DNA of 64,000 nucleotides from Mytilus edulis (lineage: Eukaryota). Below, piece after piece: positions 1,693-13,741 of this stretch. Below the pieces are notes generated by a model. That model saw nothing but the letters and a program-made list of their open reading frames with translations. It was not told the DNA's origin and did not search any database. The first letter of the stretch is position 1, and each line of letters opens with the position of its first letter. A program made the position numbers and the translations under genes. The stretch is from contig NC_092346.1 in the NCBI RefSeq assembly GCF_963676685.1, forward strand, positions 55,552,001-55,616,000. Reading direction: 5' to 3'.

Positions 1693-2188
1693 CCTTTCAG
1701 TTCTCGAGGTTCTGCATCAGTTGTAAAATTACCAAAAATTGACTGTTGGGGTTTCAAAGGGGCATTAGCTACGAGATATACAAAAAAAGGTATGTTTTTT
1801 GTTGAATCATTAATGAAAGTGATAAAGTGAAATTCTAATTCGCGTTTAGCAGCAAATTTTTTTCAATTTTGTCAACATAAGCTAAGAAACACCCACGATG
1901 AATTATTCACTTCCAAGTGAATAATTCGACCTCATTGAATGTTCTGTTTGTATATCATATTTATTATCAGTAATTAATTACTTTCATTTTTGAGAACTTT
2001 AATTGTTCACTTTCATTTTGACCTTATGTGATTGTACTTTCACTTTCACTTTAAAGTTACTTTCACTTTCACTTTTACTTTTGTTGATATCCTGTTTCCT
2101 GTTTTGAATTGTGAACCACAATGCCATTGGACCAATGTTAAACTTTATCAAGCTGTAGCTTTATCATCCGTTTATGGCAAACCACTAT

Positions 2189-2557
2189 GTAAGTTAAATA
2201 TTTATTACTAAGGTTTCTATTTTGTATGTGCATATTTATTTTTGATGCAAATAAGTTAATTATGAAGTTCTAGAGCAAAGTATTTACATACATTTTTCCT
2301 ATGATATTTTGAGTAAGGAACCCCGTCTGAGCTATATTTCTAGTGTTTATGCTAAAGCATTTGTCAAATTTTAATACTTCATAGTACATTCATTTATTTG
2401 ATTTGATATTGAAGTTGTTAAATGTTGATTTTTGTATCTACTAAACTTACTTAACTATATCAATTTTAAGCAAGAACATTACACTTTTATTGTTGTATTT
2501 TTGGTTCAATATAATAGCCTTTCCAAATATTATATGGTATTTTCATTCTTGTTGCAG
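2189..2557 (+). other. Putative 369-nt GT-AG intron inside the LTR (same intron at 12513-12881)
   Basis: Donor AT|GTAAGT and acceptor TTTTCATTCTTGTTGCAG|C. Both sites are identical in the two LTRs. Confidence 0.7.
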
Positions 2558-2607
2558 CTTTTTACCTGCATACACAGTTGTCTATATACATTCATGCCAG
2601 AATTAGG

Positions 2608-2613
2608 AATAAA
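2608..2613 (+). promoter_or_regulatory. LTR polyadenylation signal
   Basis: AATAAA about 70 nt before the LTR end, followed by GT-rich sequence; present in both LTRs. Confidence 0.55.
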
Positions 2614-2682
2614 CTTTAATATGAGCAATGGTGTTTTAGTTAACTGTATGGTTATCTATCTGCTGAGTACCTTAGCGGAATA

Positions 2683-2696
2683 GTAAAAAGATAGTG
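2683..2696 (+). promoter_or_regulatory. Non-tRNA primer-binding site GTAAAAAGATAGTG
   Basis: Sits at the PBS position, lacks the TGG that pairs with tRNA CCA, and is complementary to the spliced LTR junction CACTAT|CTTTTTAC. Confidence 0.7.
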
Positions 2697-2716
2697 TAAA
2701 TTTATGTCTGAAACGC

Positions 2717-4330
2717 GTGAGAAGCGTGACCGAAAGTTTACACCTAAAGGACAAACCATTTAACGACCAGAGTAACGAACTGCGCGAAAAATGTGAGAAG
2801 ATTTGGTCTAAAATCGAAGATCTTATGATAATTGTTCCTTCTAGCAACACATTAGAAACATTAAGACAGTTAAATACAGATATTGACAGTCGCTATAAAA
2901 ACTTTTGTCGTCGGTCCGAAGAATACAAAAGTGTCATAACAAGAGCTGATACAAATGAATCACAACAGTTGATAAGTGATTATAATGAATATGTTGTGAC
3001 GTGTGTTTCAACATACAGAAAAGTGAACTCTGAAATTAAGAAAAAGAAAGCTGACTTAGTTGAACAACTATCACAAGTAAGTAGTTCAAATGGAAGTTCA
3101 AAAGCAAGTAGTAAGCGGGCAAAGGCAGAAGCCGAGAAAGTGAGACTGGAATTTGTTAGAAAGGAAGGCGAACTTATGAAACAAAAAGCAGCCATTGAAG
3201 CTGACATAAACATTGTGAAACAGGAGAGTAAAGTCGCAGCAGCTGAAACTGAGGTGCGTATACTTGAACAAGGTGATCAAGAACAGGATATAATTTCTGA
3301 AGTGTGCGAAAAGAAGGATGACATTAGTAAATATGTCCATAATGTGCATTTTCAAGAACCAGTTGCATCATGGTTAAATCAACAACCAGACATTCCTGTG
3401 GTTGCTTCATCTGCTTCTCAGGCCTTTAGTGCAGCTGTAAGTGTTCCTCAAATTCCGAGTGTTGTAAATACAGTTTTCACACCACTATCTAGTCAACCAA
3501 ACATTCAACCATCTTTATCACAATATCCTGTACAACCAAATGCTAATTTTACAAATTCTCTACTACATGATGCTATGACAGACATAACTCGTTTTATGTA
3601 CAGAAAAGACTTTCTGCTGTCGCGATTCACAAACTTTGATGATAAACCGGAGACATACGAATCATGGAGAGCATCATTCCAAAGTGTAACACGAGAGCTT
3701 GGCATAACACCCTTTGAAAAATGGATTTATTGGTCAAATGGTTGGGTACAGAATCTTCCAAATTTGCAAAAATCATCCGTGCTGCTAATGCTCATGATCC
3801 GCCTGGAGGTCTATAAAGAATATACGATCGTCTACAAGAAAGATACGGTAGGCCTGAAATGGTTGAAAGCGCACTCAAACGTAAGTTAAACGCATTTCAA
3901 ACAATTACAAACAAAGACTGTGTAAAACTATATGATCTTTTTGTAAGTTATATTCGAGACATGTGTCAAATTCGAAATGATCCTGCCTTTTCGTACAATA
4001 GTGTCAATTCAACTGCTTATTCTAAACAACGTCTGTCAGTGATATCCAGGAGACTAGAAGTTTCTTCCTAAAGTTCAGTTAGATGCCCACTACACAAGGC
4101 AGGACATACCCTCAACGACTGTCGTGGATTCAGGAAATATCCAATACAAGATCGTCAGAAGTTTCTACGCGAAAAGAGAATTTGTTTTAAATGCTGTGAA
4201 ACAAATGAACATTTCGCCTCCAATTGTACAGTGAATGTTAAATGTGTCGTATTTGGAAACAAACGCCATGTCACAGCAATGCATATAGACCGATATACTC
4301 AAAATCGAACACAAGCCGATAATGAAAAGC
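2717..4330 (+). pseudogene. BEL gag (coiled-coil region, FDDKPETYESW motif, zinc knuckles), disrupted
   Basis: ORF 2717-3889 with a frameshift near 3720, apparent internal deletion near 3940 and a stop at 4069-4071. Then CPLHKAGHTLNDC and CFKCCETNEHFASNC knuckles. Confidence 0.85.
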
Positions 4331-7300
4331 CTCTCACAGCTGATGGCGGGGAGCATAGTGAGGTCAATGTAACTGTCAAATGTACCACTCTTTGTGGTGA
4401 CATCCGGGTTGGTCGGTCCTGTGGAAAGACCCTTCTAGTAGATGTATACTTACCAAACGCCCCGGATAAGTCGATGAGAGTCTATGCTGCCATAGACGAT
4501 CAAAGTAACCGCACTTTGATTACTCCAGAACTCTTTGATGACCTTGGAATTCAAGGACAACATGCACAATTTAACATGTCTTCGTGTAATGGTAATTCGA
4601 CCATGAAGTGCCGAGTTGCTAACAGTATATGTGTTCGATCGATTGATGGCAAATCTACATTCGAATTACAAGACGTAATTGAATGCGATTCTATTCCTAG
4701 TGAATTACCGGAGATTGCGACTCCAGAAGTTGCATTTGCCTACTCACATCTTCGTCGTATTTCGTCATACTTACCTCCTCTTGATCCGAGCATCAAAGTT
4801 GAACTTTTGATTGGTCGAGATATACCTGAGATTCATCATGTGCAAGAACAAATTACTGGAGATAAAGGTGAACCTTTCGCTCAAAGATTAGCACTAGGAT
4901 GGGCGGTAATAGGAGAAGTGTGCATGGGCAAAGTACATACTCCAAACAAAATCAGTGTGCGTAAAACTCATGTTCTCAACGATGGACGATGCACCACGTT
5001 CCCTCTTTGCGAGAACAACATAGAGCTAATTGATCTCAAAGATGACATTTTCATCAGGACGACAATTTCTTAGCTTGATGGACACGGATTTTAGAAAGGA
5101 TGACACTGGTCATTGGTCAGCGCCATTACCGTTTAAACAACCAAAACCACCTATTCCAAACAACCGCTCACAAGCCTGGAAACGAGCACAGATACTTGAC
5201 ACTAGTTTGCGTAAGAATCAAACAAAACGTGAACATTTCATGACATTTATGGAGAAAGTGTTGAACAGCGGTGCAGCGGAAATTGCACCTAAAGTTATTT
5301 CAGGAGAATGTTGGTGCCTTCCGCTTTTCGGGGTTTATCATCATAAAAAACCAGACCAAATAAGGGGAGCATTTGACTCGTCTGCAGTGTACGGAGACGT
5401 ATCGTTAAATAATCTATTAATTTCAGGACCAGATCTTACAAATAACCTCGTTGGAATTCTTATGCGTTTTCGTAAAAATGCTATTGCTATAACTGGAGAC
5501 ATTGAGCAAATGTTATACCAGTTCAGAGTGTCAAATCATCACAGAGACTACCTTAGATTCTTTTGGGACCAAGATAATGACTTTTCGAAACCTCTCATTG
5601 AATATCGTATGACATCTCACGTGTTTGGTAACACGCCTTCACCTGCCGTGGCTTCTTACGGCCTTCGACAAGCTGTTGCAACTTCCGATGAAGACGTCCG
5701 TGCATTTGTATGTAAAGATTTTATGTGGACGATGGTCTCACTTCATTCACCAACAAAGAACAAGCAATCGATCTTGTAAAGAAAACTCAAAACGATCTGA
5801 AAACAAATGGACATATAAGATTTCACAAGATTGTGTCGAATGATATTGACGTCATGAAAGCTTTCCCCAGTGATGACCTAGGTAAAGACTTGAAACATTT
5901 GGATTTGTGTTCAGATATATTACCTACGCAACAAAGTCTAGGTATAACATGGGATCTTCATTCCGATAATTTTGTGTTTCATGTAAATAATGATGTCAAA
6001 CCTATAACACGAAGAGGACTCCTATCTTCAATAAACAGTTTGTTTGACCCTTTGGGTTTCGTATCACCTATTGTGATTAGCGGTAAAATTCTTCTCCGTG
6101 AAGTAGTTCCACCTGGAACTGACTGGGATGAACCGTTAAGTTCTGAACATGCTGATAGATGGAACCTTTGGCTTGAGTCTGAAATCTCTTGGCAATTTTG
6201 AAATTCCGCGAATGATTACTCCTGAATCAGTGTCGACAGCGCACCATCTTGAGATTTATATTTTTTGTGATGCTTCCGAACAAGCAATTTCTTCAGTAGC
6301 CTATTTGAAATCCGTTAATGAGACTGGAAATGCATCTTTAGGTTTTCTGATGGGAAAAACAAAACTAGCACCTTTGAAAGGTCACACAATTCCTAGATTG
6401 GAACTTTGTGCTGCTGTTCTTGGCGCTGAGTTAGATGAAGTCATTTGCGACAACATGAAGCTTTTACCGGAGACTTGTCATTACTACACGGACAGTCAAG
6501 TTGTCCTAGGATATATTAGCAATACCAAAAGACGATTTTTCACTTACGTCACAAATCGTGTTGAAAAAATTCACAAAACGTCAAATCCGTCTTAACTCGA
6601 ATAATTCAAGCCCTTTCCGTGTCCGATTTTCTCCTACAAGAGGGCTTGAACTCCTTATGATCATTGGCCGCGTCGCCTGCTCTCTGTGAGAGAGAGCCAA
6701 TCGGCGGCGATCAGGATAATGAGTCTGCGCAACTGTCTTGTAATTGTCTTACCGAACACGTGTGTTCAATTAACACAAATCCGAAAATACTTAATTAACA
6801 TCAATTAACATCAATTAACATGAGTTTACATCATTTAACATCAATTAACATCCGGAACTCCTCCTTCTTTAGCTGCCAATTTAAAACAAAATTCCCATAT
6901 TGCATAGCGGTGTGAATTTTCCGGTTGACGGTCTTGATCGAGGAAGACGTTCAGGCGTTAATGTAGCCTTCGTAGATCAGAGGAATATAACGACTGAATT
7001 ATTCGGGTTAAATCCGTCTCAGTGGTCCTACATATCAACTGATCAGAATCCAGCTGATGCCGAAACTAGATTTTCAAGCTCACCAGATATGATTCTTGCC
7101 ACTAGATGGATAACAGGTCCGACATGTTTATCATCACATGATGTTATGATTGAAGACAATTCTTATCCGTTAGTAACACCAACTGAGGACAAGGAAATTC
7201 GTCCTTTAGTATTATCTAAAAAAACAGTTATTCGAAATCCAGAGATCGGTTGTCATCGTTTTACGAATTTTTCAAGTTTGAAAGCTCTCATTAGGGCAGT

Positions 7301-7884
7301 TTCGTTTTTGAGACATTTTGTACGTCCTTGGAAATCAAAACGTTCTAGTCAAAAAGTGTCTGAAGACAAAGATAGTCCAAAATTTCAAAAGGAGACCGAA
7401 TCTTTTATAATTCGTCAAATTCAGAATGAGATTTTTGAAAAGGAAATTTACAATTTGAACGAACAGAAACCAATTTCAAAGGAACGCTCAATGTTGAAAT
7501 TAGATCCGTTTGTTGATGAACACGGAGTGGTTAGAGTAGGAGGTAGACTCAAACATTCAGTTCAGATTTGACACTTGGTGAGAAACATCCGATACTTATT
7601 CCTGGTAATCATCACTTCGCCAAACTTATTGTCTTACATTATCACAAACAATTAGACATCAAGGACGTCATTTAACGGAAGGCAGTATCAGAAGTGCAGG
7701 ATTTTGGATAATTGGTCTTAAGCGCCTAGTTAACACTGTTATTTCCGAATGTGTATTGTGTCGTAGATTTCGTGGTAACCTTATGACTCAAAAAATGTCT
7801 GATTTACCGGAGGAACGACTGAAATCGTGCCCACCTTTTACTTACGTCGAAGTGGATTGTTTTGGTCCTTGGGACATTGTAACT
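4331..7884 (+). pseudogene. BEL pol, 5' part (protease, RT, RNase H, integrase N-terminus), frameshifted and interrupted
   Basis: PR YAAIDDQSNRTL. RT KKPDQIRGAFDSS, DIEQMLYQF, HVFGNTPSP and a frameshifted YVDD. RNase H FCDASEQA, IPRLELCAA, TDSQVVL. IN PPFTYVEVDCFGPW. Confidence 0.92.
6593..7010. mobile_element. 418-bp non-autonomous DNA transposon with a 9-bp TSD (Mutator-like), inserted in the BEL RNase H region
   Basis: TIRs TAACTCGAATAATTCA and TGAATTATTCGGGTTA; TSD AATCCGTCT (6584-6592, 7011-7019). Removing it restores SNPSQW. Six 10-bp TCAATTAACA-type repeats at 6791-6850. Confidence 0.9.
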
Positions 7885-10800
7885 GGGACAATATCCCTAA
7901 TGCGCCTTGAAATGAGGAACTCAAAAGTCACGTGTAAACAAAACATCTCTGTGTAGTGATATTTGACACATTTCTATGATAAACAAATGATTAAGCTGAA
8001 CCATTTGTGTTTATTTAGAAAGTAAGGGAACACAGAATAAATGTGTAAAACCTATGGAGCCATTAAATGTGTTTAAAGTATTAAATTTTTATAGAACTTA
8101 TTGTGTCAAAAATGGGATTTTTTACCATGAGGAGCCACATCGCAAAAGGATACTCTGGGTTTGCTAATTTACGGAAAAATGAATCACACTTCGTACCCCG
8201 AAAATTTAACCACATATGTAAAAATGTCTCAGCTTCGAAACAAGCCATCATACATATACAAGTTTATGATATGGCCTGAGCAACAGAAGAAAACTTTACC
8301 ATTACCGCCTATGTAGAAACAATTGCGCATATTGCCCGATCTTCTAACAAAAAATCCTGAGATATCTTAAGATGATTTCACCTTGTACACCACAGAAAAT
8401 AGTGAAAATGATGGTTAGTATTTTTTTATTTATACCTAGTTATCATAAACAGTTTAAATATTTAAGATAAATATTATTGATAAAGATCAGCCAAAAGGCA
8501 ATGAAATTTTCGCTTTTAAAATGCATTACTGGCACGGGGCTGAACACTTTTTTTAAGGCACAATCATAACTTTAATTACCCCCGAAAGATCCGAAAGGAA
8601 TTGTTTATTTATTGAAAAAGGCTGCAAGAAATAACTTACATGTATTATTATTAAATTGTAAGTAAACATGACACAATATAGTCTTGGTTATGTAATTATC
8701 ACTCTGGTCTACAGGAATAACTGACAATCAAGGGAGATAACACACTTCACACGAGTAAAGTGAGATACATCATCACGTGTGCTTTTATCCAATGATTTGA
8801 CCCTGGTCAGTAGATATCATATGCAAATAAACAGAAAACAAACATGTACATGTATTAAGAAAATCATGAATTACTATTTTTAATACACACGAGCAAAACA
8901 CTTGATATTGTCATTTCTCAGTGAAAAGGGGGAGGGTCAAACCTTCTTGAAAACAATATTGCTATTCAACTATTAAGCTAGTTAGCTACTACTCATTGCT
9001 TCTAATATAAACGGTTTGAATGAAGGTGGCTAAGCAGCAAGGGAGAAGCTTTTTTCTTTCTTTACGATAAAACTTTCAAAAGTTAGATTTTTCTCTCTCA
9101 ATAATACTTATGTATTTAAATTAAATGATAACACAGCTTGAGTAATTTTTTTTGTCTTATTTCAGTTCCAGACATATCATTACTTTTTTACATGAGATGG
9201 CAAACTAAAGGTTTTAAAAAGTCCTGAATAATTGGTAAGCATTTTGTTTTGTTAGGCAAGCTCTAAATTATTTATTTATGGTATTTGTGCAATTGAAATT
9301 ACAGTCGGTATGTTAGAAATATGCTAATATGAAAACTGTTGCTATGGTCTTGATATTAAATGAAAAGGCTTGGTTACTGATCTTTTCGACTCGATGTTTC
9401 CCATGTAACACTGCAAACTATATTTAGCACTATTTTGATCTGTCGTTATTTAATGACGCCATAATACATGTGATGTCACAATGTTTCCTTTAATACCTCA
9501 TGTGGATTTCTCACTGATAAAAGTTTTTACTGAAATACATGTAAAAAGCCTTTTTTTCTCAAATAGAATTATGTGAAAGGACAAGTTTTGAAAATTTGCA
9601 CTTCATTGCACTCTAATTACATGATAAGAATGAATTTCTCAGTAGTTTCGAGTGGTTTCCACAGTATTAGATACCAGATGTCCACTAGTAAAAATAATTA
9701 TTTTGGTGGTTTTTTTTTTATAAAATCTACATTTTTGCATAATTTCTGTGTCAAAATGCACTTTTAGACACAAGAAAATGTTATGGAATGCTTTAACAGG
9801 GTCTGTGTATTGTAATTTAAGGTTATCATCAGAAGTTTTGTCCTTGTTTTGAATAGTGAAGGTATACTGGAAGAAATTAATTATACATACACATTGTATT
9901 AAAAATAAATGAATATAGCGATAAAAGTGTCATTGCCATATAGTGCTGAAACTACTTTATTTTTTTTCAGAAATGGACAAAAATACACAGATTTATTCAG
10001 AATGTCATACCGATGAAGATCACCTAAAAATATTTGGTCAAATCAGAACTATGGATTTCAATATGGGACAATATCCCTAATGCGCCTTGAAATGAGGAAC
10101 TCAAAAGTCACGTGTAAACAAAACATCTCTGTGTAGTGATATTTGACACATTTCTATGATAAACAAATGACTAAGCTGAACCATTTGTGTTAATTTAGAA
10201 AGTAAGGGAACACAGAATAAATGTGTAAAACCTATGGAGCCATTAAATGTGTTTAAAGTATTAAATTTTTATAGATAAAGAAAGGCAACAGTAGTATACC
10301 GCTGTTCAAAACTCATAAATCCATGGACAAAAAACAAAATCGGGGTAACAAACTAAAACCGAGGGAAACTCATTAAATATAAGAGGAGAACAACGACATA
10401 ACACCGAAACGTAACACACACAGAAACGGACCAAGCATCAGACAAAACACCACGAGAATAACAAATATAACATGAAAACCAAATACATGAATTTGGGATG
10501 GACAAGTACCGTGCCACCTCTTATCTCAATTTCTCAAAAATAAGAGAAAACACAAATGACTCAACGTTAAAATGCAACACACACAGAAACGAACAATAAT
10601 ATAACAATGGCCATCTTCCTGACTTGGTACAGGACACTTTTAAAGGGGAATAAAAGTGGTGGGTTGAACCTGGTTTTGTGGCATGCCAAACCTCGCGTTT
10701 TAATGGCAAAGTTAAATATAACATTGAAATGACAACATAATATTACAGGACTACAATACAAATTAATAGAACATATTAGACAAAGAAAAACATGATTAAT

Positions 10801-11239
10801 AGATAACAAAAAGCTTCAGGTTTAAAATTCAATACGCCAAAAACGCGCCTTGTCCACACAAGACTTACAAGTGACGCTCAGATATATAAGATCGAAAGTT
10901 AAAAAAGTACAAAGTTGTACAACACTGAAGATCAAAAGTTGAAAAGGTTTCGCCAAATACGGCATTGTTTTTATGCCCGGGATAAGAACAATAGAACTTA
11001 TTGTGTCAAAAATGGGATTTTTTACCATGAGGAGCCACATCACAAAAGGATATTCGGGGTTTGCTAATTTACGGAAAAATGAATCACACTTCGTACCCCG
11101 AAAATTTAACCACATATGAAAAAAATGTCTCAGCTTCGAAACAAGCCATCATACATATACAAGTTTATGATATGGCCTGAGCAACAGAAGAAAACGTTAC
11201 CATTACCGCCTATGTAGAAACAATTGCGCATATTGCCCC
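7885..11239. mobile_element. 3.35-kb A-B-A insertion with GGG...CCC termini and a 4-bp TSD (Sola2-like ends), inside the BEL integrase
   Basis: TSD AACT (7881-7884, 11240-11243). Removal restores FGPWDIVTRRTRGG. Direct repeats 7885-8338 and 10065-11239, each bounded by GGGACAATAT...ATATTGCCC. Confidence 0.88.
10276..10990 (-). mobile_element. Retroposed dispersed repeat with a degenerate hammerhead segment, inserted in the second A copy
   Basis: Absent from the first A copy and flanked by an ATAGA duplication (10271-10275, 10991-10995). Begins AAAGGCAACAGTAGTATACCG, as do copies at ~29560, ~31742 and ~43032. Confidence 0.8.
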
Positions 11240-11243
11240 AACT

Positions 11244-12122
11244 AGACGAACTCGTGGAGGAAGCGTCAACTCAAAACGATGGACTGTACTATTTTCATGT
11301 ATGTCATCTAGAGCTGTACACATTGAGGTTATTGAAGAGATGAGCACCTCATCTTTTATCAATGCGCTACGACGGTTCGTGTCATTAAGAGGCAAAGTTA
11401 AGAAATTATTTTCCGACCGAGGGAAAAATTTCGTTGGAGCAGCGAATGAACTTGGGATTCCTGCAATATGTGTGGAAGATAAAACTTTGAAAACCTTTCT
11501 TAACGAAAAAGGTACTGTTTGGAAGTTCAACACTCCATATTCGTCACATATGGGAGGCTCGTGGGAACGTCTCATAGGCATGGCTCGCCGTATTATTGAC
11601 TCTATTCTCTATGATGCAAGACACAACAAATTAACACATGAGGTTCTGTGCACCTTTATGGCGGAAACAACGGCCATCATGAACTCTCGTCCATTGATTC
11701 CAATTTCATCAGACCCTGATTCACCGTGTGTTTTGTCGCCAAATGCTCTGCTAACTACCAAAACCATTGACTGTGATGAAGATTTTAGTCATTTGAACAT
11801 TCGATATGTATACACTACTCAATGGAAATTCGTTCAAGTACTAGCTGAACAGTTTTGGACTCAGTGGCGTCGCGAGTACTTACAAACGTTGCAATCTCGA
11901 CGAAAACAAACTCAGGAGAACATTAAAGAAGGTGATACCGTTATTCTCAAGGATGGTGATCAACACAGAAACCTTTGGCCAATAGGACTTATTGAACATA
12001 TATTTCCTAGTAAAGACAAATTAGTTAGGAAAGTGTTAGTAAGAACAATCAGAGATGGACAAGTTCGTGTATGTGTGCGACCAATCACACAGACTGTTCT
12101 TTTGTGTCGCAATGCATTGTAA
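11244..12122 (+). pseudogene. BEL integrase core and C-terminus
   Basis: SRAVHIE, FSDRGKNFVGA, GGSWERLIG, NSRPL and FWTQWRREYL motifs; stop at 12120-12122. Confidence 0.93.
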
Positions 12123-12248
12123 AAGACTGGTATTATTGAGTTTTTGTCTGTATTATTGACATTAGTTAGTTAAACTAATTTTTGAGGGTTTATATGTATT
12201 GAAGGTCATATTTTTCTTTTTATGAATGTGGTGATATTTTTCATATCA

Positions 12249-12257
12249 GACGGGGAG
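12249..12257 (+). promoter_or_regulatory. Short polypurine tract (GACGGGGAG)
   Basis: Purine-rich run immediately before the TG that starts the 3' LTR. Confidence 0.7.
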
Positions 12258-13006
12258 TGTTCTGTTTGTATATCATATTTATTATCAGTAATTAATTACT
12301 TTCATTTTTGAGAACTTTAATTGTTCACTTTCATTTTGACCTTATGTGATTGTACTTTCACTTTCACTTTAAAGTTACTTTCACTTTCACTTTCACTTTT
12401 ACTTTTGTTGATATCCTGTTTCCTGTTTTGAATTGTGAACCACAATGACATTGGACCAATGTTAAACTTTATCAAGCTGTAGCTTTATCATCCGTTTATG
12501 GCAAACCACTATGTAAGTTAAATATTTATAACTAAGGTTTATATTTTGTATGTGCATATTTATTTTTGATGCAAATAAGTTAATTATGAAGTTCTAGAGC
12601 AAAGTATTTACATTCATTTTTCCTATGATATTTTGAGTAAGGAACCCCGTCTGAGCTATATTTCTAGTGTTTATGCTAAAGCATTTGGCAAGTTTTAATA
12701 CTTCATAGCACATTCATTTATTTGGTTTGATATTGAAGTTGTTAAATGCTGTTTTTTGTATCTACTAAACTTACTTAACTATATCAATTTTAAGCAAGAA
12801 CATTACACTTATATTGTTGTATTTTTGGTTCAATATAATAGCCTTTCCAAATATTATATGGTATTTTCATTCTTGTTGCAGCTTTTTACCTGCATACACA
12901 ATTGTCTATATACATTCATGCCAGAATTAGGAATAAACTTTAATATGAGCAATGGTGTTTTAGTTAACTGTATGGTTATCTATCTGCTGAGTACCTTAGC
13001 GGAATA
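12258..13006 (+). repeat. 3' LTR (749 bp)
   Basis: Near-identical to 1940-2682 and followed by TSD TTGAA. Confidence 0.96.
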
Positions 13007-13741
13007 TTGAAAGCGTATTGATATGACCTCCAATTATAACCCTTATAGCTGGAGATAGTTTACGCATGTATTCAATTATTCAAATTAAATATTATTGATT
13101 TATTGAAGCATTTTGAGTGGACAAAACAAATTTTACTATAAATGTGAAAATGCAAAAATAACACGAAATGCACTTAAAATTTCAAATAATACATTGAGTC
13201 ATTTTTACAGTTGCAGTTACGTTATCAAACGTGTATTGTGGCATACATTGACTAACTTAGAAAAGTGTTGTTATAGTTATTCACATCCTTATTTTGTAAA
13301 CCCTTTGTTATCACTGACATTGGGGTTTTCAAATCAAATATTATTGATTTAATTTTGGTGCCCATAATTGAAACAAATTGCCTAATTTCCAACTAGAATC
13401 CGATTGATTTAAATTTTAGTGCCTAATTTTGAAAATGATCGTATTTTTCCAAACTGAAACCGATTGATATCATCTATGTTGCCTTTATTTCATAAAGATT
13501 GTCTTTTTTTAATTGGGCACTGATTGGTATACCTTTGGTGCCTATATTTGAGAAAGACTGACTTATTTGTATATTTGAGAACGATTGTCTTCTTTCCGAC
13601 TGGATTTCGTTCAATTGGTTGATAATTTTATTAGCACGTAAAATTGATAGTATCGCTTCATTTTTTTCTCCTAATACTTGATAACTAGAAGACTTGTGTA
13701 GAGAGATTGTAAAAAAAACCTCCAAAACATATACAAAGTGT

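Follow-up and report, generated by a model that had tools for sequence, protein, structure and literature searches.

The window analysed here is a stretch of 64,000 nucleotides from Mytilus edulis (contig NC_092346.1, positions 55,552,001 to 55,616,000 of the forward strand), and it contains a degenerate LTR retrotransposon of the BEL/Pao type at 1940-13006 on the forward strand. LTR alignment places the 5′ LTR (TGTTC...GGAATA, 743 nt) at 1940-2682 and the 3′ LTR (749 nt) at 12258-13006. The two LTRs are 97.6% identical and are flanked by the 5-bp target-site duplication (TSD) TTGAA at 1935-1939 and 13007-13011, while the polypurine tract AGACGGGGAG precedes the 3′ LTR at 12248-12257. The internal region (2697-12247) encodes gag, Pao peptidase A17, an integrase core and DUF5641 in broken frames (PF05380 at E 2e-24 and 3e-14; PF18701 at E 8e-20; rve at E 1e-5). 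A nested composite insertion with 134-212-nt direct repeats lies within the element at about 7885-11239. The element itself sits inside another repeat that is well expressed, with an RNA-seq depth of 20-60 over window 1880-1953; reads from other copies of that repeat run past 1940 into their own sequence, which also confirms the LTR start.

The 5′ LTR carries a consensus GT-AG intron of 369 nt (2189-2557), with a GTAAGT donor, a pyrimidine tract and an acceptor (TTGCAG) ending at 2557. Upstream of it lie U3 and exon 1 (1940-2188), which hold a conserved CCA at -7 to -5 from the donor. Tandem ACTTTC repeats (GAAAGT on the other strand, resembling interferon-regulatory-factor sites) occur at about 2036-2078, and such repeats, about 100-150 nt upstream of the donor, are conserved between families, being found also in a sister family and in the foreign contig described below. 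Exon 1 ends in CACTAT (2183-2188) and exon 2 begins with CTTTTTAC (2558-2565). AATAAA is found at 2608-2613, and the remainder of R, to a poly(A) site inferred to lie about 15-25 nt after it, and U5 occupy 2566-2682. The same donor and acceptor stand in the 3′ LTR (intron 12513-12881). The first 14 nt after the 5′ LTR (2683-2696, GTAAAAAGATAGTG) are the exact reverse complement of the two exon ends once joined, with 2183-2188 pairing with 2691-2696. No TGG-type primer-binding site follows the LTR. The preliminary description, which had proposed that this site is complementary to a splice junction in the element's own LTR, is therefore confirmed in its observation. For this window alone the match is unlikely to be due to chance (about 2e-4): 5 of 20000 shuffles of the 14-mer, and 1 of 5100 interior 14-mers of the element, have any GT..AG split complement in this LTR.

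The window's own family provides little further information. The genome holds about ten full-length copies, all of which carry the intron and show only decay mutations without compensation, and the family is too young to be informative; two further loci, L023 and L025, are truncated LTR fragments. A search for the 14-mer on both strands returned 21 occurrences, against 27 for a reversed control. Seven of these are element copies, while the rest have unrelated contexts and no tRNA, and no intronless LTR of this family was found. An Rfam search of 1800-2900 gave no match. Four RNA-seq runs were aligned to 1880-2960 at 90% similarity, but the family is nearly silent: the few reads (depth 0-19, from diverged copies and partly of uncertain strand) cross the donor or the acceptor unspliced, and no spliced read was seen, coverage being too thin to count for or against splicing.

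A gag search of the genome uncovered relatives at 24-46% identity, and ten BEL/Pao families in total, with gag identity down to 24-28%, show the same split match of 11-14 nt. In every family whose 5′ region could be read, the LTR contains a consensus GT-AG intron (283-619 nt) with a pyrimidine tract and YAG acceptor, AATAAA lies about 40-60 nt after the acceptor where it was noted, and the LTR is directly followed by the complement of exon-2 nt 1-8 and then of the last 3-6 nt of exon 1. Donors are GTAAGT in eight families, GTGAGT in one and GTAAGA in one. The junctions are CACTAT^CTTTTTAC in the window family (14 nt), CAATAT^CTTTTAC in a sister family (13 nt), and, in the further families designated by locus, CAAT^CTTTTTAC in L083 (12 nt), AGG^TTTTTTAC in L084 (11 nt), AAT^CTTTTCAC in L085 (11 nt), AGT^CTTTTTAC in L086 (11 nt), AAT^CTCTTCAC in L088 (11 nt), CAGA^CTTTCTAC in L091 (12 nt), CTAGA^TTTTTTAC in L096 (13 nt) and AAGC^TTTTTCAC in L094 (12 nt). 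For L094, the site lay outside the sequence first examined; it was predicted from the donor and acceptor and then read as predicted, 12/12. LTR ends were fixed independently in eight families, by target duplications or by where 3′-LTR and solo-LTR matches stop, and in these pairing starts at the first base after the LTR. In the L086 family, however, 3′-LTR matches end 1-3 nt beyond the predicted boundary. The LTRs of the window family (2679-2682), the sister family and L083 end in TA (..AATA or ..TATA) instead of the usual CA, whereas the other seven end in ACA.

Both halves of the match co-vary with the site. The exon-1 ends are TAT, AAT, AGG, AGT, AGA and AGC, each with its complement in the site, and exon 2 changes at positions 1, 3, 5 and 6 and has one 1-nt length change, all of which are mirrored. 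Each junction 11-mer is 11/11 complementary to its own family's site and at most 10/11 to any other, while shuffled sites find a split complement in 0.1-2.4% of trials per family. All 120 pairs are Watson-Crick, with no G-U, which fits templated copying of a primer better than selection on an RNA helix alone. Another family, L089 (C12:74996284-74997584), has the acceptor and the exon-2/site complement (TTTTTTAC / GTAAAAAA), but no donor matching the next site bases, GCC, lies within the 1.3 kb examined; its intron holds a hairpin-ended insertion that looks like a MITE. Locus L095 gave no LTR signal. A degenerate pattern for acceptor and exon-2 start followed by LTR end and site gave 229 genomic hits against 144 for the control. 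Many of these have a constant spacing of ~115 nt (for example C1:29577696-29577810 and about 40 similar places) and probably belong to a further, abundant family with the same architecture. A motif, GTATGGAACGCC (variants GTAAGGAACCCC and GTATGGCAACCC), is conserved in the otherwise unalignable introns of L083, L084, L085, L086 and L088, with a variant at about 2314-2330 of the window, and may be a cis element that explains why the intron is retained.

Natural copies preserve traces of splicing. One young provirus of the L088 family (C13:12831549-12838818, TSD AGACT) has a 5′ LTR that lacks the intron to the base, whereas its own 3′ LTR keeps the 431-nt intron; the two are otherwise 100% identical. 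Thus, an RNA spliced at its 5′ LTR copy and unspliced at its 3′ copy went through reverse transcription and integration, which is the asymmetry that the preliminary description had proposed for keeping the intron. Another example is contig JYMV01024714.1 (L099; gag 59% identical), the closest relative found outside this genome and the only one found in a metagenome collection; a scan of viral contigs gave nothing. Its LTR is intronless, its homology to the window's LTR (75-81%) ends exactly at base 2188 and then continues with exon 2, and the 11-nt complement of the site is contiguous. In this LTR, at about 2574-2878 of L099, a ~151-nt segment holding the end of U3, the exon1-exon2 junction and 27 nt beyond is tandemly duplicated, and the contiguous self-primer is therefore present twice. 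The natural intronless leader L093:919-1030 folds with its 5′ end on the site (z = -3.6). In addition, a 5′-truncated copy of the window's family (L026/L013; C6:2663828-2670739, minus strand) starts with the reverse complement of 2683-2714, fused through the 14-mer to 2566 onward, forming a 32-nt inverted repeat around R-U5, a snap-back product of this inverted repeat. Its 3′ LTR end is normal, it has no target duplication, and about 26 nt of a host ~99-nt tandem repeat are missing. The single arm mismatch (C instead of A) equals LTR base 2182, as if at least 7 nt of exon 1 had been copied.

These elements most likely prime their own reverse transcription with spliced RNA instead of a host tRNA (probability about 0.8), as the preliminary description had suggested; every sequence-level prediction of that proposal that could be tested held. 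In the proposed mechanism, which is inferred, the spliced leader pairs with the site, with fold-back on the same RNA favoured, and the RNA is cut after exon-2 nt 8 (C2565), as RNase H does in Tf1. The new 3′-OH would prime minus-strand DNA through U5 and the rest of R (2682 back to 2566), and the strong-stop DNA would transfer to the 3′ R. Copying of the unspliced 3′ LTR would then restore exon 2, the intron, exon 1 and U3 in both new LTRs, while plus-strand copying of the RNA primer would rewrite the site in each cycle and keep it perfectly complementary to the junction. In this model only spliced RNA can prime, so replication depends on host splicing. The transcription start, poly(A) site, cleavage and priming are all inferred, however, and the families come from one genome plus one foreign contig. 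The model also leaves unexplained how the 3′ copy of the intron escapes splicing and why intronless LTRs are so rare here, only one having been seen among the roughly 100 LTR copies listed for nine families, although an intronless lineage exists elsewhere.

A possible but less favoured variant is that the template is the unspliced full-length RNA and the primer a separate spliced RNA of the same family, for example the 5′ LTR donor joined to the 3′ LTR acceptor, annealed in trans and then cut. This would keep the intron without different splicing at the two ends of one RNA, and the few RNA reads seen are unspliced. However, the C13 provirus shows that an RNA with a spliced 5′ leader served as template in a real replication event, and a primer with a long unpaired 5′ tail would give the plus-strand strong-stop DNA a non-homologous 3′ end. 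It is unlikely that the pairing is instead a regulatory hairpin just upstream of gag, controlling translation, packaging or dimerisation, with reverse transcription primed by something else. The natural intronless leader does fold into such a hairpin and priming itself was not observed, but in the eight families with fixed boundaries pairing starts at the border that is set by the 3′ end of the minus-strand primer, no alternative TGG-type or tRNA-like site is present, and a purely structural helix would tolerate wobble pairs. Self-priming by unspliced RNA starting at the acceptor (2558), with a chance exon-1 match, is very improbable: a TATA-like TATTATAT lies about 25-30 nt upstream of 2558, but the exon-1 half co-varies with positions 9-14 of the site in all ten families, GT-AG signals are kept in introns that otherwise cannot be aligned, and two natural copies show precise intron removal. 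A chance match or a host RNA primer of the same sequence is contradicted by the ten different sites that each match their own LTR, the per-window chance and the absence of a tRNA at the non-element sites of the 14-mer.

A more tentative extension is that transcription starts only about 3-7 nt upstream of the donor, so that exon 1 is a few capped nucleotides and, after splicing, the first 11-14 nt of the RNA are the whole primer, exactly as in Tf1. A conserved CA 5-6 nt before the donor in all ten families, a U3 plus exon 1 of only 130-139 nt in four families and AT-rich tracts 20-35 nt upstream in several families hint at such a start, without being conclusive. Splicing would then act as a binary licence, in which unspliced RNA can be translated but cannot prime, whereas spliced RNA can prime, and the intron is rebuilt in every cycle from the unspliced 3′ LTR. 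The trait would be ancestral to a large BEL/Pao clade, which would overturn the view that Belpaoviridae are tRNA-primed.

No report of self-priming in BEL/Pao or of a primer made by splicing was found in the literature searched, which lacks most subscription journals. The arrangement described here would be the first self-priming described for BEL/Pao elements and the first retroelement primer assembled by pre-mRNA splicing, tying retrotransposition to the host spliceosome as a new point of control and of conflict. It would also explain why tRNA-based annotation finds no primer site in these elements, and it gives a simple sequence rule, junction equals complement of the first bases after the LTR, that can be checked in any genome.

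Self-primed reverse transcription is established for Tf1, Tf2 and Tj1 and predicted for the Tf1/sushi group of Ty3/gypsy, plant Tcn1 and copia TAR lineages (PMC4600332; PMC5341516; PMC6317226; Levin 1995/1996 as cited there). As in those systems, there is no tRNA site, a site next to the 5′ LTR is complementary to about 11 nt of the element's own leader, the pairing ends where the primer 3′ end must be, and the leader has internal stems inside the loop; the intronless L099 has this layout in contiguous form. Here, however, the complementary stretch is interrupted in the DNA by a spliceosomal intron and exists only in spliced RNA, and the elements are BEL/Pao, not Ty3/gypsy, the Pfam hits being BEL/Pao-specific. 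In Tf2, transcripts that lack the self-primer cannot be reverse transcribed (PMC5341516), and in both cases a host RNA-level decision determines whether a transcript carries a usable self-primer; there the decision is where transcription starts, while here it would be whether the LTR intron is spliced. Canonical Belpaoviridae are described by ICTV as primed by a host tRNA at an 18-nt site complementary to the 3′ end of tRNA-Arg or tRNA-Gly (PMC8742986). The mussel element shares with them the Pao-type peptidase A17, integrase core and DUF5641, the LTRs, the 5-bp target duplication and the polypurine tract, but it has no tRNA-type site, and the site that it does have matches the element's own spliced LTR RNA.
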